Positions 3,804 to 30,924 of a stretch of 64,000 nucleotides of DNA are shown one piece after another (within the stretch, counting starts at the first letter, position 1; each line of letters opens with the position of its first letter). The notes below the pieces were generated by a model. It ran no database searches. It saw only the letters and a program-made list of their open reading frames with translations, and had not been told where the DNA came from. Where the stretch lies: the IMG/VR virus record IMGVR_UViG_3300034358_000008, positions 248,001 to 312,000 of that record, one strand, 5' to 3'. A program made the translations under genes and the position numbers.

Positions 3804-4592
3804 ATGGAAAAGATATATGTTGTGCATTACATCATCGATACGTATGGTGAAACAACCAACTACCGAACGGTAAATATGACGGAGGTAATAGACCGTTACG
3901 AGATGTTGACTGACCGCATCAAAAAGGCCATGTTGACCAATGGCATCGAAAACCCAGACGAACTGGTTACCTACTCCTTTCGGATGTTGGGTGATCTGCG
4001 TAATGGTCACTACCAACGGAAAGAACTGGTTGAAGTTAACCTGGAAGCTCTGAAGGAAGACCTCACTGGGTTCCCGTGGGAGAACTGGGATTGGGTAAAA
4101 GCCTTCCAGCCTGTGGTTGATGTCGCTGGCTACTCGATTGTAGAACTTGAAAAAGAACTTCAGTCGTTCGGTCCGTCGATGCATAAGTCTAACGATTACG
4201 TCGCACCGTGCTATCGTATCTACGAAAGCGGGCGGGCGGATTACCGTAAGTCGGAGTTCACTGACAACACCAAGAAGCAACAGCAAACCCCACCTGCCCA
4301 GAAACCGTGGTATGCGCGATTCAAGGATAACTACCTTGTCCCTTTCGGTGATGCACTTACTGAAAATGCGCCAACCATTCTGGCTGTAACTACCACGATC
4401 GCGGCAGTGGCTGTAATGATGCATACTTCTAATGAGTCAGTACATGTGGTCGAGGAGGCCACTCGCAAGAACGAAGAACTGTTGCGACACATCGAAGAAA
4501 CGATCGAGGATGCCGTGGAGTTACCCCAGATCGTTAAGGTTGAACTCGGTGATGACATCGAGGTCATTGCGACAGGTCATCGTACCTGGTAG
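3804..4592 (+). CDS. hypothetical protein with one hydrophobic segment near the C-terminus
   Basis: AGGTGG before ATG 3804; segment APTILAVTTTIAAVAVMM. Confidence 0.8.
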   Translation: MEKIYVVHYIIDTYGETTNYRTVNMTEVIDRYEMLTDRIKKAMLTNGIENPDELVTYSFRMLGDLRNGHYQRKELVEVNLEALKEDLTGFPWENWDWVKAFQPVVDVAGYSIVELEKELQSFGPSMHKSNDYVAPCYRIYESGRADYRKSEFTDNTKKQQQTPPAQKPWYARFKDNYLVPFGDALTENAPTILAVTTTIAAVAVMMHTSNESVHVVEEATRKNEELLRHIEETIEDAVELPQIVKVELGDDIEVIATGHRTW

Positions 4593-4600
4593 CAATACTT

Positions 4601-4627
4601 AGCCCCCTCGTCGGAGGGGGCTTTTTA
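4601..4627 (+). terminator. intrinsic terminator
   Basis: AGCCCCCTC-GTCG-GAGGGGGCT + TTTT. Confidence 0.85.
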
Positions 4628-4651
4628 TAACCTGATGCTGGAGTATTTCAT

Positions 4652-4960
4652 ATGAAGGTTTCCGTAATGGTGGCCAACTACTTTGCTTTAATAAAGGAGT
4701 TGAACCGTCTTGATCGAAAGAAACATGAAATCGTTTTGATGGCTAACCCAGGTGCAGTGCATTCAGTTACATTGCATTTGATTGATGAAGGTGCTCGTGC
4801 TTTCGTCAAGGTAGTAGAAGGTGAGGCCTGTACCGTTACACTCTGGAATGCTCAGGGTGAATACGATACTGGTTTGGAAATCACCGACGGTAACATCAAG
4901 GAGTCAGCTCAGCAGATAGTTGATTATCTACATAACCCAACGAATGCGTTTAAGGAGTAA
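4652..4960 (+). CDS. hypothetical protein, paralog family A
   Basis: GGAG RBS; C-terminal A-x-x-I-x-x-YL-x-NP motif shared with next two genes. Confidence 0.8.
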   Translation: MKVSVMVANYFALIKELNRLDRKKHEIVLMANPGAVHSVTLHLIDEGARAFVKVVEGEACTVTLWNAQGEYDTGLEITDGNIKESAQQIVDYLHNPTNAFKE

Positions 4961-5305: not shown

Positions 5306-5609
5306 ACTGAAAAACGCAATGTCATTGATCAATCGTCTGGAGAAGCTTGAAACTAAAAACTTCAAGCTTTTCGTAAGACTGTTGTTCTCTGAGAATGGCT
5401 TCATCATTTCACCCGTTGGGAAGAAACAATGCATTAAGCTGTACGTTGAACAGCACCATCACCTGTTGGCCGTGTACATTAATCACCGTGAGAAATATGA
5501 TACGGAAACGATTATTGCTGACGATGCTGATTTGGATGAACTGGCTAACAAGATCATGCAGTACCTGAAATACATGGAACACGTTGTAGAACACGAACAG
5601 TGTAGTTAA
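5289..5609 (+). CDS. hypothetical protein, paralog family A
   Basis: MLIAPELKN...DDADLDELANKIMQYLK aligns with the previous gene; start moved to ATG 5289. Confidence 0.8.
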   Translation: MLIAPELKNAMSLINRLEKLETKNFKLFVRLLFSENGFIISPVGKKQCIKLYVEQHHHLLAVYINHREKYDTETIIADDADLDELANKIMQYLKYMEHVVEHEQCS

Positions 5610-5639
5610 ACAAACCCTAATCCTTAAAGGAATTTACCC

Positions 5640-5981
5640 GTGCCTAAGACTAAATTGATCCTGCTTGAACAATCCCTCGTCTCCATGCTGGATCATTGCA
5701 TGGGTGAAGCGTGGGTTGAATGTGGTGATAACCTACCCGATGTGGTAGTGCATAACCTCGTCGATGGTCACCTTACCTGGACTGTACATGGTCAGGCAAC
5801 AACTGAACTGCATTATCGCGTTGACTTCATGTTCACCGATGATGACGTCTGCTTCGTTGAATGGGAGCAAGGTGTGGGTATTCAATCCTACGCATTCCCT
5901 AACCCGACCGAAGAACGTTTCTTCATCATGGCTGGAATGGCATTGGCCTTCCAATCTAACGTTCTCCAACAGATCCAGTAA
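5640..5981 (+). CDS. hypothetical protein
   Basis: AAGGA RBS, GTG start. Confidence 0.75.
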   Translation: MPKTKLILLEQSLVSMLDHCMGEAWVECGDNLPDVVVHNLVDGHLTWTVHGQATTELHYRVDFMFTDDDVCFVEWEQGVGIQSYAFPNPTEERFFIMAGMALAFQSNVLQQIQ

Positions 5982-6906: not shown

Positions 6907-7776
6907 TTAACGAAGGTAGTTAGGACGACGAACACCTTTAGCACGATCCCAATCAAGAATCTTGATCAGTTCCGATACATCACGATGCTCAGCAGACTCC
7001 AACCCAAGGCGTGTACGCTTCTGGTTATCATCTTGGATCTTCCACAGTACATCAGGGGTGATCTGACGTTCAGGGATGATCATTGCTTCTTCAGCTGTGA
7101 AGTTTTCCAGAGCAGGAGAAGTATATTTGTTAGCGGTAAAGATACCACCTTCACCTACGAAGTCCCATGTAGAGATTTCACGGGTGTACTTAATGCCACG
7201 GTATTGATCGTCCTGAGTAATAGAACGTACCGAACAGTAAGTGTTAATGCTTGGGTTATCCAGCGAGTCTTTGAAGACTTGAGCAAAAGGACCGTAAGGT
7301 TTAACTTCAGCTACAACCATCTTGACAGGCTTACCCTGCTCATTCGTACCTGGAACAATAGTCAGGTTACGGATGTGTGCACAAACGCGGTTGTCGTCGA
7401 TCTGACGAATCCGCATGAGGTACTCAGCATCAGAGAGTGGCTTACGAACAACCCGACCATCGATCATGAGATCTTGGAATGGTTCAGGGTGTTTGAACTC
7501 CATGAACAAAACGCCTTTCTTAAGACGTCTCATCAAAGAACTCGATGGTTCAAACATCGCTACGCCGGATGCTTCATCATAAAACATACCAGCGGAGTTT
7601 TGTGTACCATAGCTACCAACCACGAGGGTGTAGTAACCGTCAGCATCCGCAGGAAGGATGCCGCGTTTGTTAGTACCAGCCAACATCGCACAACCAACAG
7701 TAACTGCTGATTGCGCCAAGGCAACTTGACCAGATGGGTTAGGGATCGTTCTCCCTCGGATAAGACCTAAGTTCAT
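6907..7776 (-). CDS. prohead (head maturation) serine protease, phiKZ gp175-like / T4 gp21-related
   Basis: EFKHPE (catalytic His) and CSVRS (catalytic Ser) motifs, TWDFVGEGG, and SPALE|NF candidate autocleavage site; position downstream of vRNAP beta. Confidence 0.85.
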   Translation of the reverse strand: MNLGLIRGRTIPNPSGQVALAQSAVTVGCAMLAGTNKRGILPADADGYYTLVVGSYGTQNSAGMFYDEASGVAMFEPSSSLMRRLKKGVLFMEFKHPEPFQDLMIDGRVVRKPLSDAEYLMRIRQIDDNRVCAHIRNLTIVPGTNEQGKPVKMVVAEVKPYGPFAQVFKDSLDNPSINTYCSVRSITQDDQYRGIKYTREISTWDFVGEGGIFTANKYTSPALENFTAEEAMIIPERQITPDVLWKIQDDNQKRTRLGLESAEHRDVSELIKILDWDRAKGVRRPNYLR

Positions 7777-7789
7777 ATACCACTTCCAT

Positions 7790-8509
7790 TTAAGTGCGGA
7801 GCAGTTCTTCGATCATCTCAACCGACTCAGATTGGTTAACCAGAGCAGAGTTGATACCTTCGCTGTAATAAGCACCGTTTAGTTTAGACGTTGTATCGGA
7901 AGTGTTCCAAATAACAGAACGGAAGGGAACCGTAACAGGAGGTTTAGTCCGTAGGTCTTCCGGGCGTGCAAGGATGTGCCGATACAGCCGAGTCATATCA
8001 TTCGGATCTCGAGCAATAGTTGAAATAATCAACTCGATAATCGAACGACCACCAAGGTCAACCCCGGCGTGCTCTTTTGCTGTGTCGAACATATTCGCCA
8101 TGTCGAAGTAATCCATGTACCAAGGAATGTTACCCTTAGCAATGAACTCATCGTACATGTAGTAACTGAGGGTGTCTGTCACAACCAAAGCGGTCGTGTA
8201 GATTAACTTGTCTCCAGCTTCAAACTGGAACTCGATGTAAGGTGTTTCGTTAACTACGATCTTCTGCGTGGAGCTAGGACAGATACGCATCATTGCGATA
8301 GTCTTGTTAACAGCGTATCGGTCTCCCATGATGATCGGGAAGAAACCAAAGACAAAAACCTCACTGCCTAGGACAGCAAGGTTCTTAGCTGTAAAACTTT
8401 CGGGAATCTGTACGGTACACGGAACAGTAGTAACGACACTTCCATCGGATTCTTCTGACAAACGACTGAGTACGTAGTCTGCATCACGAATCAGATTTGG
8501 AGTGTTCAT
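7790..8509 (-). CDS. conserved head-associated protein, phiKZ gp176-like
   Basis: 239 aa, AAGGA RBS, directly upstream of protease; assignment by recalled synteny. Confidence 0.65.
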   Translation of the reverse strand: MNTPNLIRDADYVLSRLSEESDGSVVTTVPCTVQIPESFTAKNLAVLGSEVFVFGFFPIIMGDRYAVNKTIAMMRICPSSTQKIVVNETPYIEFQFEAGDKLIYTTALVVTDTLSYYMYDEFIAKGNIPWYMDYFDMANMFDTAKEHAGVDLGGRSIIELIISTIARDPNDMTRLYRHILARPEDLRTKPPVTVPFRSVIWNTSDTTSKLNGAYYSEGINSALVNQSESVEMIEELLRT

Positions 8510-8519
8510 GGGTTATCCT

Positions 8520-9743
8520 TTAATTTTTAAGCCAAACTTCGTAGGAGCTACCGTCATCTTCACGAATGGTCTTACCACTACGTTTGAATCCAGCCGACTC
8601 GAATAACTTTTGACTCTTAATGTTGTCAGGTTCAATCATAGCTCGACCGGGTTTATCTGCAAAATACTGCGCTACAAATGCCCCAGCTATACCTTGATGT
8701 TGGAATCGTTGAGTAACGAAGATTGCGCCTGTGCGGTATCGACCGTCGCCGTCCTTACGTGGTACAGCAAAACCAACGACCTCGGTCCCCTTAAAGAAAC
8801 CAGTTACGGTCTTAGTTTTACGTCCCCTAACGACATCCCCTAAAAACCTGTCCCCTTCAGACTCATCGATTAACTTAACAATCATTGGGTCATCAACAGA
8901 GATGGATTTAAAAGATACGTCACCGAAAGATTCTTGACCGAGCTTAGTCTTAAGGTCACGATGAAACTTATCAGCAGCTTGACGTTCACTGATTGTTGGT
9001 GGAAGATCCTTAACTACGTTATCAACGTGAGCTTTAAATCGATCACCTTGCGACACAGATGCGTAAGCTGTACGACGTTCACGCTCTTCAAACATCAAAG
9101 GAGAACCTTGATGAATGTCTTGCAGTCTAGCTACACGATCAGGTAAAGGCCAGTTAGGCTCAACACCCATAGCGTCACATTCACTGGTAAGGCGCTTCTC
9201 TTCAGCTTGTAGCACTAATTGAGCAGACTTAGAATTCGCAGCAGCGGCGTAAGCTTCTGCCTTGGTGAAGTAACCTTCTTTGCTGACTGTTTGCTTTGTG
9301 AGTTTACGGATCAACGCATCGTTAACTACGATAGCTAGAATAGTCTGATGACCATCTTGAGCTGCACGTACTACACGGTGATAACCATCTAAGGTAGCAA
9401 AGTTCCCCGGAGAATACTCATGGACTATAACTGGATATTTGAGATCTACTTTAGCAACGCGTTCTGCATCAACTGAAGTAGCGGGTTCAATCATCCATAC
9501 AAGTTTAGAGATAGGGAAGTTAACTGGTGTCATACCCTTAGTGACTTTCAGCAATTCATCTACCAAGTAAACTGAACCTTGGTGGGAGAATAAGCTATCT
9601 GCGCCTTCCTTGTACTCACTACCAACCTTCTGGGATTCCGTCCAAGCGGGATAAGGGAGGCCGTTCCGCCGGGCGTGTAGCCTAGCGAGACGGCGCTCAA
9701 TTTCTCCGGGACCCCAAGCTTCGTTAGAAGGTTGGCTTAGGTC
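8520..9743 (-). CDS. ParB/Srx-like domain + GNAT acetyltransferase; probable -1 frameshift extension of the 9737-11779 protein
   Basis: Frame is open from 9755 to 8520 with no ATG/GTG/TTG until TTG 9566; PVIV...LDGYHR ParB-like motif; TGAIFVTQRFQHQGIA and EPDNIKSQKLFESAGF GNAT motifs. Confidence 0.75.
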   Translation of the reverse strand, partial: DLSQPSNEAWGPGEIERRLARLHARRNGLPYPAWTESQKVGSEYKEGADSLFSHQGSVYLVDELLKVTKGMTPVNFPISKLVWMIEPATSVDAERVAKVDLKYPVIVHEYSPGNFATLDGYHRVVRAAQDGHQTILAIVVNDALIRKLTKQTVSKEGYFTKAEAYAAAANSKSAQLVLQAEEKRLTSECDAMGVEPNWPLPDRVARLQDIHQGSPLMFEERERRTAYASVSQGDRFKAHVDNVVKDLPPTISERQAADKFHRDLKTKLGQESFGDVSFKSISVDDPMIVKLIDESEGDRFLGDVVRGRKTKTVTGFFKGTEVVGFAVPRKDGDGRYRTGAIFVTQRFQHQGIAGAFVAQYFADKPGRAMIEPDNIKSQKLFESAGFKRSGKTIREDDGSSYEVWLKN

Positions 9744-9749
9744 AAAGGG
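9621..9749 (-). promoter_or_regulatory. candidate programmed -1 ribosomal frameshift signal
   Basis: C_CCT_TTG heptamer (9749-9743), 6-nt spacer ACCTAA, then GCCAACCTTCT (9736-9726) pairing with AGAAGGTTGGT (9631-9621). Confidence 0.65.
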
Positions 9750-11779
9750 GTTTCGTCATCTTCTTCAGATTCTTCATCGGTAGTTTCAGTCTCTTCGACT
9801 TCGGCTTCCTCAGATTCTTCTGCGTCAGTTGCTTCAGCGGTAGATTCGGTTTCTTCAGTTGCCTCGGTTTCGGTTTGTTCAACCTCTGTCTCAGCTTCTT
9901 CAGTTTCCTCTACTTCTTCAGCGACTTCCTCTTCGTCACCTTCGTCGGTTTCGAGATCAGCGTACGGATCTGCTTCTTCATCGCTGCCGTCACCTGTAAA
10001 GTCTTCTTCGACGTCTGTTTCCGCTTCACCAGTTTCGGCTACATCGGTTTCACCAGTAGCGTCACCGAGATCGGTATCGTCAGCAGTGCCATCAGTACCC
10101 AGATCACCAGCTGTGTCGTCCAGACCATCCCCAAGATCGGAAGTGTCATCACCCAGACCAACATCAGACAAGCCGTCATCGCCATTAACACCGGCGTCGC
10201 CGACAGTGCCTTCTTCACCGGCAATACCCAGTTCGTCGCCACCCAATCCAGCTTCGCCTTCATCTGTAGCTTCATCATCAGCAATAGCCAATAGACCGGA
10301 ATCATCGATAGGACCAGTAGCAGAACCTTCAGGATCAATCTCAGCTGAGAACATTTCAACCTTGACTTGTTTAGCCTGGAAGATAGCAACCAGAGTAATC
10401 ATCGCTTGCGTAGCCAGTTCACGAACGGTAGCCTTGGTATAAGTCTGACCAAACTGATCGATTGCATCCAGATACTCAAGGTAGGTGGATTCAGGGAAGT
10501 ACACACGGCAAACCAATGCCGAGAACACTTTGTACGGATTGTCGTAATCATCTCGACGAACGTAACGCAGTGCTTCAATCAGACCCTGTTCCATTTCTGG
10601 AGTGTAACGATCTTTCAACAGTTCACTACGACCGATTTCACGGAAAGCAGAGATAACGTTGTTCAGACGTTGACGATCAGAGTAGTCAATTGCAGCCTGT
10701 TGGATCATCGGATAGATTTCGTGCCAACGTTCAATGAACTTGTGAGCAGCAGCATTCAGATACTTAACGTCAGTAACGCCAGTGTTCTCAACAGCAGCAC
10801 CCAAGATAGCTTGAATGTCACCACCACCTACAACCCATGGATCGAATACGTCACCGTTAACAGTAACGATAGCACGACGGGTAGCGATAGGGTTGGTAGC
10901 TTCGTTCTTCAGAATCATTACACCCTGTTCACGCATGTCAGCACGACGCACGTAAGCGCGCATCAGATAGAAGCCGAACATTTCGTGCAACAGTTTCATG
11001 GTGTGTTCCCACTCTTCCAGATCAACGGAGAAGTTAGGGACGACCACTGGGTTGTCGATATAGTGACCGCAGATGAAATAAGCGACCAGCAAATCGTCAA
11101 CGTTGAACGGAGCAGCTTGTGCTGACAGGTAAGGCAAACCAGCAGGCATTACGTGACCAGTAGTGAACAAGGAGTTCCATACCAGTTCCAGTCGTGCACT
11201 ACCAACTTGCAGAGCCCACTCGGTGATCTCTTCTTGCTCAAGGTGTGGGTTGTTGACCGACATCATTTCGATAATCGATTCAGCAGTCTGACCTTCGAGT
11301 TGGAAAGACTTATAAGAGTCTTTAGGACGAACGGTGGTGTAACGAGTGTTGATGTGGTTAACCAACGTGGCACTGTTGTGTGGTGCCAGATAACGCCATG
11401 CCTTAACCGAGTACTCGGGTTGGCAAGAAGCCGATTGCATACCAGCATAAGTCTGGTGCATAGCTTTAATAGCAGGGATAATAACGTTAGTCGTGTTGAA
11501 CTGAACCTTGGCTACAGCTTGACCCAAGTTAGCAACGATCGATTCACGGGAATCATCTTCAGCTGGAGTGGTATCTTGGTTGATCGCATCGAAGTGATCT
11601 TCTACTGCTACCATCTCTTCATCAGGCAATGCAGTGTTGGTTGGTTCGTCGTCAACTTTGTAGGTATCGGCGAATACAGCCAGGGGGAACTCAGGGTTCC
11701 CCACAGTCAGTACTTTACCTTCCCGAGTCAACGTCTGGGCCGCGTCACGGACAGCGTCCATAGTTTCGGATTGGTACAT
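9737..11779 (-). CDS. head protein, phiKZ gp177-like, with ~207-aa acidic C-terminal tail
   Basis: 680 aa, AGGAG RBS; position between vRNAP beta and gp176/protease; assignment by recalled synteny. Confidence 0.7.
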   Translation of the reverse strand: MYQSETMDAVRDAAQTLTREGKVLTVGNPEFPLAVFADTYKVDDEPTNTALPDEEMVAVEDHFDAINQDTTPAEDDSRESIVANLGQAVAKVQFNTTNVIIPAIKAMHQTYAGMQSASCQPEYSVKAWRYLAPHNSATLVNHINTRYTTVRPKDSYKSFQLEGQTAESIIEMMSVNNPHLEQEEITEWALQVGSARLELVWNSLFTTGHVMPAGLPYLSAQAAPFNVDDLLVAYFICGHYIDNPVVVPNFSVDLEEWEHTMKLLHEMFGFYLMRAYVRRADMREQGVMILKNEATNPIATRRAIVTVNGDVFDPWVVGGGDIQAILGAAVENTGVTDVKYLNAAAHKFIERWHEIYPMIQQAAIDYSDRQRLNNVISAFREIGRSELLKDRYTPEMEQGLIEALRYVRRDDYDNPYKVFSALVCRVYFPESTYLEYLDAIDQFGQTYTKATVRELATQAMITLVAIFQAKQVKVEMFSAEIDPEGSATGPIDDSGLLAIADDEATDEGEAGLGGDELGIAGEEGTVGDAGVNGDDGLSDVGLGDDTSDLGDGLDDTAGDLGTDGTADDTDLGDATGETDVAETGEAETDVEEDFTGDGSDEEADPYADLETDEGDEEEVAEEVEETEEAETEVEQTETEATEETESTAEATDAEESEEAEVEETETTDEESEEDDETPLT

Positions 11780-11791
11780 GATAGCTCCTAA

Positions 11792-11989
11792 TTAGCAGTT
11801 CAGATGTTTAAGCATACGACCAACCAATGCGGCTTTAATGTCCGCAGCGGAGAGCGATTCGCCTTCGATGGTGTTGGCAGCCGATTCGGAGCCCAGGGAG
11901 CGCAGAATTGCTTCTGCACCCAGTTCAGCAGCAGCGGTCAGAACGGCAAGGTTCTGTCCGAAGACTACGTTGTTACTTTGCTTTTGCAT
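11792..11989 (-). CDS. small protein in the vRNAP/head operon
   Basis: GAGGA RBS before ATG 11989; 65 aa; overlaps the stop of the vRNAP beta gene. Confidence 0.75.
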   Translation of the reverse strand: MQKQSNNVVFGQNLAVLTAAAELGAEAILRSLGSESAANTIEGESLSAADIKAALVGRMLKHLNC

Positions 11990-14900
11990 GTTTAGTTCCT
12001 CGGTATACACCAGCAATGTGTTTGGAGAGTTGCTTCAAGAGCATGCTAGTGGTTGCGATTAGTTTCGGAGACATTACCATCCGTTCTTCTACAGACGTGT
12101 TGCCGAAGATGATGTCGATTGGAGTGTCGTCTTCAAGCTTGTTGACACCAGTCATCACACGAGAGATTACGGTCTTCATCTGGTTACACAATACAGCCTT
12201 GTCACCAGTACCGAATGGAATATCATGGTCGATGTAAATACGGATAACCATGCTATCCGGTTCCAACACTTGACCTTTAATACGGAAGGAGGAATCTACT
12301 TCACCGGAGTGAGCAGGTCGTCCTCTTTGACGTGCAGATTCAGCACGCCATTCATCAGACTTCTCTGCGAGTTTACGCAGGTTGTCAGACATGTCATCCA
12401 GATCACCGTGATAGAAACATTCGATTCGAGATACCGTACCAACTACCTTAGCGGTAGGTGTGGCAGCCGAGAGTCGCTTGAGCGTCTCAATGGAAGCTTC
12501 ATCAAACAGCGTGTTACCCGCAGTTTCAGGATCTTCAATAATACATAGAATTGAATTCAGGTCGAGGTGCTCGCCCTCTTTGACCAGATCACGGACATGT
12601 TGGTCGAACCTAACAATGACGTTCTTCACGTCAGAAGTCTGTGTGTTCAACTTAATAGCCATGGATTCAGAAACAACAGATCCGTCCTCGAGAGTATCGA
12701 GGTTGTCACTAAATACAACCACGCCAATAACCCCAGGCATCAAAGAAGCTTGAGTTGGGTTGTAGCGATCCTTCTTGAAATACTTCCGGTTGTATGAGAT
12801 TGTGTCACCGCGTTTAAATTTGTCACCTTTCTTAAGATCGGATACCAAAGCGTGCGGATACACTACACCAGCAGCAGAACCATGAATCGTGCCCAAAGGC
12901 ATCGAGTCGAGTTCACCACTTGCATACTTCACAGTTACAGCGTGCTTATCGATGGAGACAACTTCACCATCTTCATCAGCAGAGGTTGCAAAGATACTGG
13001 AAGTACGTTGAGCTACGACTTGTTCATAACCAGTACGGACTGGCGAAAGATCGTAACCATCTGCATACAAACCTTGTTGCTGTTGAATCGACGCAAAGCC
13101 GATACGCTTCATGTCGTCGTGTGCCATACCTACACCCAAGAGTGCAGAGGTAGAGAACAACTTAGACTTGGTATCAATCGATTCATCAAACACACGTGTC
13201 AAACCACGCATCGAGGTGAAGTTAGCATCAGGAGTCATGTAGGCAATGATACCTACGTCACCGGAGTCAACAGTAGACTCAGAGATAATCCCCCGATCGT
13301 TGTCACCATAAACACGAGTACGAGCAACCATCGATACAGCAGCACGACCACCCGACCCACGATAGGTCATTGCTTCTTGTTCACGCAGGTTAGCAATTGG
13401 GTTAGAGTCTTCAATAGTAGCTACAGTCGGATCGTTCAGTTCACGCCATACTTCATGACGATCGAGAACTACCTTCAGTTCAGTACTACCTTCACGACTA
13501 TTATACCGTTTTACAGCCTTAGACAGACTGCTGAAGATCTGGCCTGCAATGCGTTCGTAGCCACGATAGCGCATGTACGCACCGTCTACCTCATTAGGAG
13601 ACCAATCGGTCATGAGGAGTTCTACAGAGCGGTACAGCAACCCTTCGAAGTCAGTTGGCTCACCCATCTCTTCCAACAGACCCTTAGTGATAGGGTCCAA
13701 CCAAGCTTCGAACAGGAAATCGATCTCTTTCAAGAATCGAGCACCCATGTCTTGCTCAGCGAGGATACGGAAGTAAACATCCTTACGGTTAAAGTCATAC
13801 CGGGAATAGTTACGCAGCGACTTGTGATAACGACGTAGACCACCGAGTACCAACATGGCTTTATAGTCAGAGCGTGGGAACACCAAGACTTCATCGTTGA
13901 AAGCCAGTACCCATTCATCTTGCTGAATCACTACGCCTTTGGTACCACGAGGATAAGCCGTGTACTCAACACCGAGTTTCTCCAGCAGGTTATTGAAACC
14001 AAACTGATAACCCAGTACCAAGCCTAGAGGCAAGTCCTTACCACCCACCTTAACATCTACCGATTCCAGTGGAGCTTTGGTCATGTTCAATCCAGCGAGG
14101 TCTACGATAGTCCCCATTGGTTCAAGATCAGTCAAAGACTCTTGGAGATAGAACACACCTTGTTGGTCAACCACAACTGGAGAGTTCTGGTAAGCACCCA
14201 CCAGCACCAACCCATCCCGTTCAACATTAGCTGCTGTGATCCCGTACTTAGACTGGAAATGCTCTTCACGTTGAGGATAGTTGAAGAAGAAGTGAATGTC
14301 TCCGTTATCGAATGCGCTGAACTTAGTAGCCAGAGCAGTGTAGACTCGTGGTAACCCTTGGAATGAGGACAGATCAATTTCAGCGAACTTCGGATTGGAG
14401 ATAATAGCGTTAGACTCATCACGAGCCTTAACATCCAATTGACGAGTCAACCATTTGTCGTAGTTGTTATCAGCACGCTCCGAACGCAATACGAATGTCT
14501 TGTTCGTATAACTGGTCAACGCAACTTTCATTGGGTTAACTTTACGGATTGGAATATCAGCACGCTGAATACGTTGACGGTAAGTAACACCGTTAGACAA
14601 GAACCGACCATCCCGATCAATAACCGGAATAGTGAACTCCAAGTTACTCGATACACCACGAACAGGTTTCACTGTAACTGTGAAGGTTTGAGTGTGGTTC
14701 ATGACATCTTCATTCTCACGAATCTTAATGTCTGTAACCGATACACCTTGACGCTGGATAAACATGATGCCGTTGAGGATATCCTTAGGCAACAGAGTCT
14801 TGATGTATTTACGCATCATCGGTTTGTGAACCGACTTCAACATGGCTTTGTCCATGATAGTAGCTTTATCAGGATACGCATCCACAGGGACCGTGTAATC

Positions 14901-16415
14901 CTCATTAGCATACTGCATGGCTTCCTTAACAGTTAACCCAGAACCGAATGGGTCTGGCATTGTCTCGTAAGACATCGCTTGATCCACAGCTTGTTCAAAG
15001 CTACGTTCAGAAATCATGTTGGTCTTAGCCAAACGATACGCTCGCTTAGCAACACCGTCCAACATGTCATCGCCAGTAGAGAACTCTTCCTGCTTAGGTG
15101 CACCCGGTTTACGCTCTTCTACTTTAAGTGTCTTGGTAGCTGCCTCAGACATCTCATCGGTTTCGATGTGAAGTGTGGTGCTATCCAAATCTAACTCAGG
15201 TGGAGGAGTATAGGTGACTTGCAGAACATCAAGATCGAATGTCTTGTAGACCTTACTGAGAGGTTCAGCAACTTCCGTAACATCAATCTCTTCAACGGGT
15301 TCTTCAACAACAGCCTCTACTTCCGTATCACCGTTATCGTTCTCTTCAAGATCCTCAGTCATATCTGGTTGAGGAGCTTCAATCTCAGCTACGGCTTTCA
15401 ACAGGTTGTTAGCTTGTACGTTAGCATCGTTCTCAACGAGTGCTTGACTACCGTTAGCAAATTCAACCAGTGTGGTTACCAGACTGATGAAACGACGCTG
15501 CAATACTTCAGGTTTGAAATAAGCTTCCAGACCAAAGTCATCGATGTACGATTCAAAGCCCATTGCATAGAGAGATTCTTTGTCGTTATTCTCGAGTGCT
15601 ACCTTCTGAGCAGCCAAAGCCAACACGTCTTCTTCAATTTCTTCCTCGGTCTGTGTACGCCACTCATCGAGCTTACCAAGGTTGATAACAAAGAAGCTAC
15701 CTTGGACACGGATGAAGAAGTTAATCTGCGCTAGCGCTGCCTTAGGCACCTTAGAGATGTAACTAGACTTACGCTCCAAGCCAAGGAACCGATAAACATC
15801 AAACAGATTCAAAAGACTACCCGTATTGAACAGCTCCAAGAGGTGTTGGTTCTGGGAAGTCTCAAGTTGTTTGAACTGAGCGATGGTTGGCATCCGCTCA
15901 GGGATATGCAGTTCCATGAAATGGTTCCAGTGAGGGAACCGGTCTACAGCTTTCGCTACGCCGTCCCAAACTGTTGCAGCATTGTTACTCCAGCGGTAGT
16001 ACGTTGCCTTATAACTGGCAATGTAGCGATACAGCGGGTTGAGCATGTTGTAGTTGAACAACGCGACGTTCTGTTGATTCAAACGTACCGATTCATCACG
16101 ACGCAGTGGTTTGAAGAAACGATGTTGTTTACGGAATTCGTTCATGAGGGTGATAGGTAACACCCCTGTACGCTTAGGACTACCATCAAGGGTTTCCAAC
16201 TGAGTAAAGTGTTCAATGAACACCTTACCTTTCAGCTTAGCGATAATAGGGTCAGCTTGGCTAGGTCCCATTACCGCAGTGTTGTCATCCCAGAAGTGAT
16301 AGACGGTCTCTATCGGGAAATCAAATTTCTTAATGGCGTGCAGACGAGGAGACTGAAGCTCCCCAACCTGACGCAGACCGTAGTCTCTAAGAAACTGTAT
16401 AATTTTTAAGCGCAT
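11973..16415 (-). CDS. virion RNA polymerase beta-like subunit (phiKZ gp178-like)
   Basis: 1480 aa; beta motifs FLSNGVTY, SESTVDSGDVG, GDKAVL-x-NQMK, PIDIIF; long phage-specific N-terminal region. Confidence 0.93.
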   Translation of the reverse strand: MRLKIIQFLRDYGLRQVGELQSPRLHAIKKFDFPIETVYHFWDDNTAVMGPSQADPIIAKLKGKVFIEHFTQLETLDGSPKRTGVLPITLMNEFRKQHRFFKPLRRDESVRLNQQNVALFNYNMLNPLYRYIASYKATYYRWSNNAATVWDGVAKAVDRFPHWNHFMELHIPERMPTIAQFKQLETSQNQHLLELFNTGSLLNLFDVYRFLGLERKSSYISKVPKAALAQINFFIRVQGSFFVINLGKLDEWRTQTEEEIEEDVLALAAQKVALENNDKESLYAMGFESYIDDFGLEAYFKPEVLQRRFISLVTTLVEFANGSQALVENDANVQANNLLKAVAEIEAPQPDMTEDLEENDNGDTEVEAVVEEPVEEIDVTEVAEPLSKVYKTFDLDVLQVTYTPPPELDLDSTTLHIETDEMSEAATKTLKVEERKPGAPKQEEFSTGDDMLDGVAKRAYRLAKTNMISERSFEQAVDQAMSYETMPDPFGSGLTVKEAMQYANEDYTVPVDAYPDKATIMDKAMLKSVHKPMMRKYIKTLLPKDILNGIMFIQRQGVSVTDIKIRENEDVMNHTQTFTVTVKPVRGVSSNLEFTIPVIDRDGRFLSNGVTYRQRIQRADIPIRKVNPMKVALTSYTNKTFVLRSERADNNYDKWLTRQLDVKARDESNAIISNPKFAEIDLSSFQGLPRVYTALATKFSAFDNGDIHFFFNYPQREEHFQSKYGITAANVERDGLVLVGAYQNSPVVVDQQGVFYLQESLTDLEPMGTIVDLAGLNMTKAPLESVDVKVGGKDLPLGLVLGYQFGFNNLLEKLGVEYTAYPRGTKGVVIQQDEWVLAFNDEVLVFPRSDYKAMLVLGGLRRYHKSLRNYSRYDFNRKDVYFRILAEQDMGARFLKEIDFLFEAWLDPITKGLLEEMGEPTDFEGLLYRSVELLMTDWSPNEVDGAYMRYRGYERIAGQIFSSLSKAVKRYNSREGSTELKVVLDRHEVWRELNDPTVATIEDSNPIANLREQEAMTYRGSGGRAAVSMVARTRVYGDNDRGIISESTVDSGDVGIIAYMTPDANFTSMRGLTRVFDESIDTKSKLFSTSALLGVGMAHDDMKRIGFASIQQQQGLYADGYDLSPVRTGYEQVVAQRTSSIFATSADEDGEVVSIDKHAVTVKYASGELDSMPLGTIHGSAAGVVYPHALVSDLKKGDKFKRGDTISYNRKYFKKDRYNPTQASLMPGVIGVVVFSDNLDTLEDGSVVSESMAIKLNTQTSDVKNVIVRFDQHVRDLVKEGEHLDLNSILCIIEDPETAGNTLFDEASIETLKRLSAATPTAKVVGTVSRIECFYHGDLDDMSDNLRKLAEKSDEWRAESARQRGRPAHSGEVDSSFRIKGQVLEPDSMVIRIYIDHDIPFGTGDKAVLCNQMKTVISRVMTGVNKLEDDTPIDIIFGNTSVEERMVMSPKLIATTSMLLKQLSKHIAGVYRGTKHAKAK

Positions 16416-30126: not shown

Positions 30127-30424
30127 ACGTCCTATCCGTCGTAGTTCAGTGGTTGCCTATAAAGAAGGTGGTCATTTATTCTACGGGCGGGTTATCCGAG
30201 TTTTACCTAACGGTGATATCTTCTGGTTGTGCTGTGGACTTCATTTCCATATCACTCCAGTAGCCGACTTGCATCACTTGTCTTACAAAGGTCGCTACAA
30301 CTGGAAGAAACATTGGATTCCAATGACTAGCCTTAGGAGTCTTAAACTTCAGGCCACGCGGTACCATTATGAGTACGCTCATAACACGCCGCTCGACTAT
30401 CACCACATTCGGAGAAAGCTATGA
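30110..30424 (+). CDS. hypothetical basic protein
   Basis: 104 aa, overlaps both neighbours. Confidence 0.65.
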   Translation: MVELCKRPIRRSSVVAYKEGGHLFYGRVIRVLPNGDIFWLCCGLHFHITPVADLHHLSYKGRYNWKKHWIPMTSLRSLKLQATRYHYEYAHNTPLDYHHIRRKL

Positions 30425-30924
30425 ATATCTGTCCTACTGGTTACTGTGGTTATCCATGCATGTGTGCATCGTCTTACAACCATGTAAATGCCACAGACAC
30501 CAAAGAACTAATTGGTATCTTGAAGAAGCGTCTTACCACAATTGCTGAAGGCGTAGCTAGTAAAGATACCGGCGAAGCGATGGTCGAGTTTGCAACCAAG
30601 ACCGCTGTGATCAAAGTGATCCGTTGTGATAATGCGGTTCATCAAACAAACATCGAGTTGCACAAGTTTACCCCTAACTTGAATCCTGAGGGAATCAATG
30701 CCCTTAGTGGAATGTGTTCGATCCTAAAGGTTGGCGATACATTCAAATCTAAGGAAGGGTACGATCCAGATGCTACAGGTTGGATCAGTTACGAGATCGT
30801 CAACTATAAAGGTGAGATCTCTGTTCAGGTGGTCACTAAGTCTACAGCCTATCCCGATATGACCGCGTACATCGGCTTCGAAGATGGTCTAACCTATTAC
30901 CCAAAGGATGCACTCCCAGCATGA
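30421..30924 (+). CDS. hypothetical protein
   Basis: GGAG RBS, ATGA overlap downstream. Confidence 0.75.
   Translation: MNICPTGYCGYPCMCASSYNHVNATDTKELIGILKKRLTTIAEGVASKDTGEAMVEFATKTAVIKVIRCDNAVHQTNIELHKFTPNLNPEGINALSGMCSILKVGDTFKSKEGYDPDATGWISYEIVNYKGEISVQVVTKSTAYPDMTAYIGFEDGLTYYPKDALPA

Follow-up and report, generated by a model that had tools for sequence, protein, structure and literature searches.

The stretch of DNA analysed here (the window, 64,000 nt) spans positions 248,001 to 312,000 of the IMG/VR virus record IMGVR_UViG_3300034358_000008, a contig of 324,912 bp, and carries on its minus strand a phiKZ-type block of head genes, in which the gene for a gp177-like head protein is followed by a start-less reading frame that is very probably reached through a programmed -1 frameshift. 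In minus-strand order (the strand on which window coordinates were checked and, unless marked otherwise, are given), the block consists of the gene for the beta subunit of the virion RNA polymerase (16415..11973), a small open reading frame (ORF), the gp177-like gene (11779..9737), the ORF in the -1 frame (9755..8520), a gp176-like gene and the gene for an S80 protease. The gp177-like gene, i.e. the putative carrier of the extension, encodes 680 amino acids (aa), belongs to phrog_3841 and is 69% identical to gp271 of phage 201phi2-1 and to the Viktualia homologue. Its 3' end reads GAA ACC CCT TTG ACC TAA, by which the acidic tail of the protein ends in E-T-P-L-T ahead of the 0-frame stop (TAA, 9739-9737). 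This tail (9740-10300) consists of ~180 acidic, low-complexity residues rich in D, E, T and G, and its length differs greatly among relatives, in which gp177 homologues measure 519-776 aa in total. The -1 frame opens directly after a TGA (9758-9756) and remains open for 411 codons up to its stop at 8522-8520, of which 407 would be added to the carrier; the product of 1086 aa (679 + 407) that had been proposed in the preliminary description is arithmetically correct.

The proposed slippery site, C_CCT_TTG at 9749-9743, covers the Pro-Leu codons that lie two codons ahead of the gp177-like stop and fits X_XXY_YYZ exactly in the register of the 0 frame; this, like all other coordinates of the preliminary description, was confirmed on the minus strand. 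Across the long ORFs of the window, in-frame slippery heptamers occur at 0.0016 per codon (35 in 21,832), which makes the presence of one within the last dozen codons of a given gene a ~2% event by chance. In E. coli, C_CC.U_UU.G is listed as a shifting heptamer (PMC4066793). Between the last stop of the -1 frame (TGA 9758-9756) and that of the 0 frame (TAA 9739-9737) only 16 nt are available (9755..9740), which do not contain a start codon, and a change of frame must therefore fall there. A heptamer followed by a fold in one sequence alone is suggestive, not compelling, and the decisive support for a shift is comparative.

For this comparison 16 gp177-type genomes were used, the window counted in, with relatives found by tblastn (the loci compared are labelled L001-L125; D6 is L001, RVTF4 is L002, PhiPA3 is L010, PA1C is L011 and PA7 is L012). 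The GenBank records of 201phi2-1 (gp271/gp270), Viktualia and Phabio all have the same 92-nt 'intergenic' gap. In these three isolates and in PhiPA3, C_CCT_TT(G/A) stands two codons ahead of the stop of the gp177 homologue, while the downstream ORF lies in the -1 frame and the gap is open in that same frame, where it encodes a leader of the form P-F-x-(L/V)-S-Q-x-S-x-E-A-W-G-P-x-E-L-x-R-R-L-x-R-L-x-E-R-R-G. When the -1 ORF of 201phi2-1 is used in tblastn, the alignment runs from residue 1 (i.e. from the heptamer) in all four isolates. In PhiPA3 (L010 4789-5101; NC_028999 188237-188549) a conserved ORF of 109 codons after gene 208 is unannotated in the record.

The motif itself is exchanged between genomes, as was found at the same alignment columns of all 16: nine have C_CCU_UUR, four have C_CCA_AAG at the stop or one codon ahead of it (L119-L122), and three have a bare A_AAG at or beside the stop (L117, L118 and L124). 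In two of the latter, L118 (~4490-4528) and L124 (~3905-3938), the upstream Pro-Leu codons have decayed to the non-slippery CCA CTT and CCG TTG, and the 0 frame has become a few codons longer and reaches a new A_AAG next to its stop, with the 6-nt spacing to the downstream helix (helix 1, see below) kept. All seven genomes with C_CCA_AAG or A_AAG have the same -1 leader and cargo. Every gp177-type motif found here is experimentally shifty in E. coli, with A_AAG being the best tetramer (PMC4066793). The expectation that the heptamer should be conserved in relatives having both ORFs is thus borne out in the form of the motif or an equivalent, which is present in 20 of 20 gp177 homologues with a -1 ORF and in none of the six or seven without one; the chance of so clean a split is ~1 in 10^5 to 10^6 by a hypergeometric count that ignores kinship. 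In the homologues without the motif (PA7, PA1C, L024-26, L123, which has CCT CTA, and L125) a hairpin or the start of gp176 comes directly. A search of 5.8 billion proteins gave gp177 homologues in 72 clusters, of which 51 end in P-L-x, others in ..P-K, ..P-K-R, ..P-K-D or ..V-K, and the phiKZ-like ones in acidic residues. The longest of these measures 776 aa, which means that there is no in-frame fusion among them.

The -1 frame has no ATG, GTG or TTG over its first 63 codons, as had been described, the first being TTG 9566 (codon 64). The three candidate internal starts (TTG 9566-9564, TTG 9554-9552 and ATG 9533-9531) all lie inside a ParB/sulfiredoxin-fold (ParB/Srx) module, and none of them is conserved in the closest relative (L013, 83% identity in gp177), in which the first canonical start is codon 83, inside the core of the domain. 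Small ParB-like phage proteins are homologous to the -1 ORF, as seen by tblastn, from residues 24-54 onwards, i.e. ahead of TTG 9566. Free-standing ParB/Srx homologues have their own Shine-Dalgarno sequence and ATG and start a few residues before a conserved N-terminus, Y-x-E-G..S-T-F-x-H-x-G, which in the window occupies codons 48-60; initiation at TTG 9566 would cost ~16 conserved residues.

In addition, the start-less part evolves as protein. Between the window and L013 the ratio of non-synonymous to synonymous substitution rates (dN/dS) amounts to 0.38 over the leader, to 0.08 over the ParB N-terminus ahead of the TTG and to 0.23-0.28 over the remaining ORF, by which the start-less part is at least as constrained as the remainder. 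Over leader codons 6-35 of five genomes, variable columns fall at codon positions 1, 2 and 3 in the numbers 10, 6 and 20, and synonymous versus non-synonymous codon differences amount to 64:77 in the -1 frame, compared to 9:133 and 14:132 in the other frames. As judged from these substitution patterns, the leader has a protein-coding signature in the -1 frame only, and the earlier remark that the start-less stretch reads as protein can be restated as purifying selection in that frame. In all nine C_CCU_UUR genomes the -1 stop lies 13-34 nt before the 0-frame stop, with no start codon in between. In four of them (L014, Viktualia, L027 and L028) the stops of the two frames are separated by only 13 nt (N-A-C-C-C-C-T-T-T-R-N-N-N), and translation of the leader must accordingly start with a frame change within this interval.

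Downstream of the heptamer lies a predicted long-range RNA structure. The 5' strand of helix 1, GCCAACCTTCT (9736-9726), follows immediately on the stop codon, 6-7 nt from the heptamer, and is fully complementary (one G-U pair included) to the 3' strand AGAAGGTTGGT (9631-9621), which codes for Q-K-V-G in the window and for M-x-K-A-G in 14 relatives. The enclosed stretch is as GC-rich as had been noted (65.0% over 9641-9720, versus 44-49% in flanking coding sequence) and contains an inner hairpin (~9692..9662; helix 4 of A2, helix 2 of A8) within the codons for R-R-L-A-R-L-H-A-R-R. The continuation of helix 1 that was also proposed, GGGGTCCCG (9715-9707) with CGGAATCCC (9640-9632), does pair with one mismatch, but is neither part of the minimum-energy fold nor conserved; helix 3 of the nine-genome consensus, in the region of this second pairing, has only 72% of cells paired. 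The element of 120 nt as a whole (9738-9619) folds at -52.6 kcal/mol (z = -3.35, equalled by 1 of 200 shuffles), and RNAalifold on nine genomes independently found the long-range stem and the inner hairpin.

In the alignment of 16 genomes column 12 is the last of the shift motif and column 19 or 20 the first of helix 1 in every case, a spacing that remains constant although the 0-frame stop either directly abuts the motif or sits one codon later. Helix 1 and the inner hairpin together have 90.4% of cells paired, versus 37-52% for partners displaced by 1-3 columns, and a covariation score of 0.242, versus at most 0.088 in controls, with 0 of 500 column shuffles attaining either value; since the 16 sequences are related and coding, these figures should not be taken as probabilities. 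Columns 23 and 130 of A8 in helix 1 form A-U in the window and G-C in 14 others, a compensatory change that is a synonymous CAG-to-CAA on one strand and an Ala-to-Val exchange on the other. The outermost pair of helix 1 is CG, AU, GC or GU across genomes, and pair 74/83 of the inner hairpin is CG in eight, UA in six and GC in two. The conserved spacer and covarying stem that could be expected of a frameshift signal are thus both found, with the 6-7 nt spacing invariant and helix 1 covarying across the 16 genomes, and a structured RNA domain of ~115 nt probably assists the shift. The GC-rich stretch is thus more than a structure, since it codes for a conserved leader peptide (..S-x-E..RRLxRLxxRR..) as well. 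The idea that these GC-rich 93 nt are an insertion relative to D6 and RVTF4 was rejected, given the conserved leader in genomes of the 201phi2-1 type. No upstream Shine-Dalgarno-like stimulator is conserved that can be separated from the codons of the acidic tail.

A homologue of the inner hairpin is also found after gp177 in the phiKZ-like PA7 (L012 ~4615-4650) and PA1C (L011 ~4720-4750), with stems that differ from that of the window by compensatory changes and with no heptamer or -1 ORF nearby. Its presence in genomes without the leader and its cargo suggests that the hairpin is older or longer-lived than the frameshift, and that it may have another role: either the arrangement was lost in phiKZ, or the hairpin came earlier, for example as a terminator or stabiliser. 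The -1 frame of PA7 contains a vestigial ..D-D-K-L-R-Y-L-E-G-Y-R-S.. between stops.

The extension is modular. Among relatives the -1 ORFs measure 105-409 codons and start with the leader, which may be followed by a ParB/Srx-fold module; one or two 'mid' modules come next, and a C-terminal module may close the ORF. The ParB/Srx module (phrog_17560; 9614..9261 in the window, with the conserved N-terminus Y-x-E-G..S..F.H.G ahead of TTG 9566) is present in the window, L013, L027 and L028, and in its D-G-x-H-R motif D84, G85, H87 and R88 are invariant in 20 sequences. The 'ParB-like domain' of the preliminary description holds at the level of the fold: the profile of the module matches the ParB/Srx domain of SbnI (E = 5e-4), and the top Foldseek matches of an AlphaFold2 model (predicted local distance difference test 72.5) comprise only sulfiredoxin, ParB, Noc, KorB and SbnI, at query template-modelling scores of 0.40-0.48. 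Pfam, in contrast, gives no ParBc match in the module, even at E = 1. The module therefore is a member of the ParB/Srx fold and not of the Pfam family. The 'mid' module (9197..8865; ..R-L-x-D-I-x-Q-G-S-P-L-M-x-E-E-R..) occurs in nearly all cassettes and makes up gp270 of 201phi2-1. The C-terminal module of the window (8864..8523) resembles GNAT acetyltransferases in Pfam, with marginal scores for the isolated piece (PF13673 at 24.7 bits with a cut-off of 23.6, and PF00583 at 21.5 with a cut-off of 20.7), and is also found in L117 (89% identical) and L120 (54%). That of L013 differs and is homologous to the extension of Psa21-like gp177 (blastp E = 1e-11).

A short motif in the leader may link this extension to the head. 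Seven to nine residues after the shifted codon the window has S-N-E (9728-9720), a candidate cleavage site of the prohead protease, and S-x-E is found at that exact place in 16 of 16 gp177-type leaders (x being N, K, S, T or Q). It is also present in 10 of 10 separate junctions of the ParB type described below, and in 26 of 30 junctions overall, on three carrier genes. No S/A-x-E precedes the domain in eight free-standing homologues, which carry no shift motif either. In these phages the prohead proteases cleave behind the Glu of S/A/G/T-x-E (PMC5694885, PMC10449902), and gp271 of 201phi2-1 and gp177 of phiKZ are themselves cut by the protease, the former at AVE-61, the latter at SVE-60 (PMC5694885); A-V-E at residues 58-60 of the gp177-like protein of the window corresponds to the position of the cut in gp271. 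Furthermore, phiKZ gp177 is injected into the host, as seen in a FLAG-tag assay, and interacts with inner-body proteins (PMC10449902). The gene for the S80 prohead (head maturation) protease (7776..6907; Peptidase_S80, PF20034, E = 7.7e-90) lies two genes downstream, in synteny with 201phi2-1 gp268 and phiKZ gp175, and the gene directly after the -1 ORF encodes the gp176-like virion structural protein (8509..7790; phrog_2926, E = 4.9e-90).

A separate class of -1 junctions was observed in D6 (L001 4030-4100), RVTF4 (L002 2970-3040) and L034-L040 (2470-2540). In Psa21-, D6- and RVTF4-like genomes the gene for an 'internal head protein' ends with N_NNA_AAG (G_GGA_AAG in D6, C_CCA_AAG in RVTF4, A_AAA_AAG followed by TAG in L040), then directly TAA or TAG, and the -1 frame goes on into a small ParB/Srx ORF with a start-less N-terminus, in which S-x-E lies 5-7 residues past the shift. 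The ATG assigned to these small ORFs in GenBank removes the conserved N-terminus, while L040 has no ATG. At the D6-type junctions the downstream consensus structure is weak (-8.35 kcal/mol), with local hairpins only in Psa21 and L040, and a shared stimulator is not proposed for them. A third carrier, found in L032 and L033 (2453-2827), is an ORF of 367-408 codons that ends with GTA_AAG ATG TAG, with a start-less ParB/Srx ORF in the -1 frame and A-K-E before the domain. In L020-L023 (~5600-5900), Psa21-like gp177 ends with TCG_GGA_AAG CGT (or TTC) TAA, its motif being G_GGA_AAG, and the -1 frame continues for ~91 codons with a different leader. Judged from these junctions, a portable cassette would occur in at least three independent cases, on different carrier genes.

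Among 50,697 phage records, megablast found nothing that matches the region, and Rfam over 8000-11000 returned only microRNA and small nucleolar RNA models as sub-threshold chance matches; the shift element is not a described RNA family. Scanning IMG/VR for the exact pattern of the junction returned the six known loci and two chance matches without ORFs, and a metagenome scan gave only three loci. The window does not contain tRNA genes, and 9566-9737 has no sigma-70-like promoter and no terminator-like site. A second shift candidate in the window, C_CCA_AAG in frame on the plus strand (30900-30906), five codons before the stop of the ORF at 30421-30924, was dropped, because the following gene starts at an ATG of its own, where start and stop overlap as ATGA (30921), and the two therefore look like an ordinary coupled gene pair. 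Beyond this motif the -1 frame is open for 228 codons.

Following these results, the joining of the gp177-like protein to the start-less ORF by a programmed -1 frameshift, as put forward in the preliminary description, is supported by the conserved motif, its spacing, the covarying stem and selection in the -1 frame, and every feature by which such a signal is recognised in sequence is present. A minority of the ribosomes on the gp177-like mRNA would slip back by one nucleotide at C_CCU_UUG and translate 407 more codons, resulting in the fusion of 1086 aa. By its gp177 part the fusion would enter the prohead at a low, fixed ratio, after which the S80 protease would cleave at S-N-E (9728-9720) and free the ParB/Srx-mid-GNAT polypeptide inside the head, to be ejected along with gp177 and the DNA. 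Taken as a whole, the locus is likely best explained by a frameshift fusion that acts as a Gag-Pol-like means of loading cargo into the head; the role in packaging and release, taken separately, is favoured only slightly. Whether chimalliviruses (nucleus-forming, phiKZ-like jumbo phages) possess a portable cassette of shift motif, structured leader and protease site, which tethers swappable enzyme modules to injected head or inner-body proteins and so loads a few early effectors, in fixed numbers, into the capsid to be delivered along with the DNA, may be regarded as evenly balanced.

A number of observations weigh against this reading or parts of it. C_CCU_UUG without a stimulator is only a modest shifter in E. 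coli. Part of the covariation may be due to protein constraint, and the inner hairpin, being present without the cassette in PA7 and PA1C, is not specific to frameshifting. The Leu of the refined L-S-x-E motif, as it has been reported for phiKZ, is missing from the leader, and the four Psa21-like gp177 extensions lack S-x-E altogether. GenBank has a mass-spectrometry note on gp271 of 201phi2-1 and none on gp270, so that the extension is either scarce in virions, removed from them or left unpackaged. Finally, 14 of the 16 genomes have an internal ATG in the leader (that of M-x-K-A-G, where the window and L013 have CAG), by which the cargo could also, or mainly, be made separately there.

This last point leads to the alternative that there is no frameshift at all and that the downstream ORF is initiated at TTG 9566 or ATG 9533 in the window and at the M-x-K-A-G ATG in relatives. 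The GC-rich stretch would then be a structured 5' leader by which initiation is coupled or throttled, in that helix 1 is melted by a ribosome terminating at the TAA and the region of the start becomes accessible, and in fact the 5' strand of helix 1 starts at the upstream stop, the ATG abuts its 3' strand in the 14 genomes, and both gene callers and GenBank place starts at these ATGs. However, the leader ahead of the internal ATG evolves as protein in the -1 frame alone, the window and L013 do without that ATG while their first starts remove 16-35 conserved ParB/Srx residues, and no internal start has a good Shine-Dalgarno sequence at the right distance. Since separate initiation also leaves the turnover of shift motifs and the fixed spacing to helix 1 unexplained, it is improbable as the only route, although internal initiation may coexist with frameshifting where the ATG is kept. 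The alternative that the frameshift is real but serves another purpose than packaging (a cytoplasmic enzyme kept at a low, fixed ratio to gp177, or a gp177 with an altered C-terminus in a structural or scaffolding role, with S-x-E being incidental) is somewhat less easily set aside, yet still rather unlikely. It would agree with the missing mass-spectrometry note on gp270 and the Psa21-like extensions without S-x-E, and products of the lambda G/GT frameshift show that such proteins need not reach virions (PMC5009743). Against it stand the fixed position of S-x-E in 26 of 30 junctions on three carriers, its absence ahead of the free-standing domain, and the carriers being head or inner-body proteins, of which phiKZ gp177 is injected; moreover, enzyme-like modules swap freely behind one leader, which fits cargo better than structure.

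The two remaining explanations are both very improbable. Since the window is derived from a metagenome (an IMG/VR uncultivated virus genome, UViG), and such assemblies do contain single-base errors, the frame relation could be an indel in what is really one gene, or else the ORF could be a dead remnant without a start. The indel is excluded by the same -1 relation in four cultured, independently sequenced phages and in more than ten independent assemblies, metagenomes among them, and there is no in-frame fusion in the 72 gp177 clusters; a dN/dS of 0.08-0.38 over the start-less part means selection, not decay. A change of frame at the RNA level, i.e. transcriptional slippage, would have to be ascribed to the phage RNA polymerases, and phiKZ-like phages do use their own non-canonical multisubunit enzymes. 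Transcriptional slippage as known needs runs of ~7 or more identical bases, though, whereas the runs in the motifs are only 3-4 long (CCCC, TTT, AAA), and the conserved codon register and 6-7 nt spacing to the helix are ribosomal signatures.

The claim that such a frameshift is undescribed in phiKZ-like head operons agrees with the searchable literature and the GenBank annotations: in the full texts searched, which include a 2016 recoding review but not the three primary proteome papers on 201phi2-1 and phiKZ, no description of frameshifting in phiKZ-like phages or jumbo-phage heads was found, and a slippage join is annotated in none of seven GenBank records. If true, this would be the third conserved class of frameshift in virion genes of tailed phages, after the tail chaperone and the T7 capsid, and the first in the intensively studied phiKZ-like jumbo phages. 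Annotations would need correction in 201phi2-1, Phabio, Viktualia, D6, RVTF4 and Psa21, where the gap is called 'intergenic' or the ORF is truncated at its N-terminus. It would also name candidate injected effectors (ParB/Srx-like, GNAT and 'mid'), which bears on the question of which proteins the incoming DNA brings along before there is a phage nucleus, and it suggests a natural route to load foreign proteins into jumbo-phage capsids. The turnover of sites at a fixed distance from one helix, in turn, would be a clean natural test of the requirements of a bacterial -1 signal.

Of the known systems, Gag-Pol of retroviruses, Ty and the totivirus L-A would be the closest in function, in that a heptamer and a structure near the end of a structural gene give a low, fixed amount of structural-enzyme fusion; entry into the particle and release by a protease are predicted for the phage. 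The phage differs in being a tailed double-stranded DNA phage, in having as carrier an injected inner-head protein and not the shell, and in having variable cargo without a polymerase, and there is no evolutionary relationship between the two. The motifs also recall the -1 frameshifts of bacterial dnaX and the IS3/IS911 elements, which have A_AAA_AAG or A_AAG (L040 uses A_AAA_AAG) followed by stem-loops or multi-helix structures. The stimulator of IS911 is a three-way junction; here it would be a long-range helix closed around ~95 nt of coding sequence.

Closer at hand are the frameshifts of other tailed phages. The lambda G/GT tail chaperone (reportedly described by Levin in 1993, and said to have been found conserved by Xu, Hendrix and Duda in 2004) likewise has a -1 heptamer near the end of a gene in a virion module, with conservation, turnover of sites and a ratio-setting effect, and the lambda heptamer G_GGA_AAG is also found in the Psa21-like and D6 junctions. 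The lambda site, however, lies between the tail tube and tape-measure genes, while the present pair lies beside the prohead protease, and its position between the gene for RNA polymerase beta and those for gp176 and the protease (i.e. in a head module) means that it is not a tail-chaperone G/GT. Moreover, virions of lambda lack the G/GT products, whereas gp177 belongs to the virion and its extension consists of enzyme-like modules. In 10A/10B of T7 and T3 a -1 shift extends the C-terminus of a head protein in a minority of copies, as proposed here, but this is the major capsid protein with a short, uncleaved extension; the present carrier is not a shell protein, and therefore not a case of 10A/10B, and its extension comprises 105-409 residues behind a protease motif. 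The proposed outcome (uptake into the prohead, a cut after Glu, and injection) most resembles that of the T4 capsid targeting sequence of IPI-III and Alt (PMC5694885). In T4 this is an N-terminal peptide of 10-20 residues encoded in-frame with each cargo gene, whereas here a carrier of 680 aa would be attached by recoding, and the cut would fall C-terminal to it.

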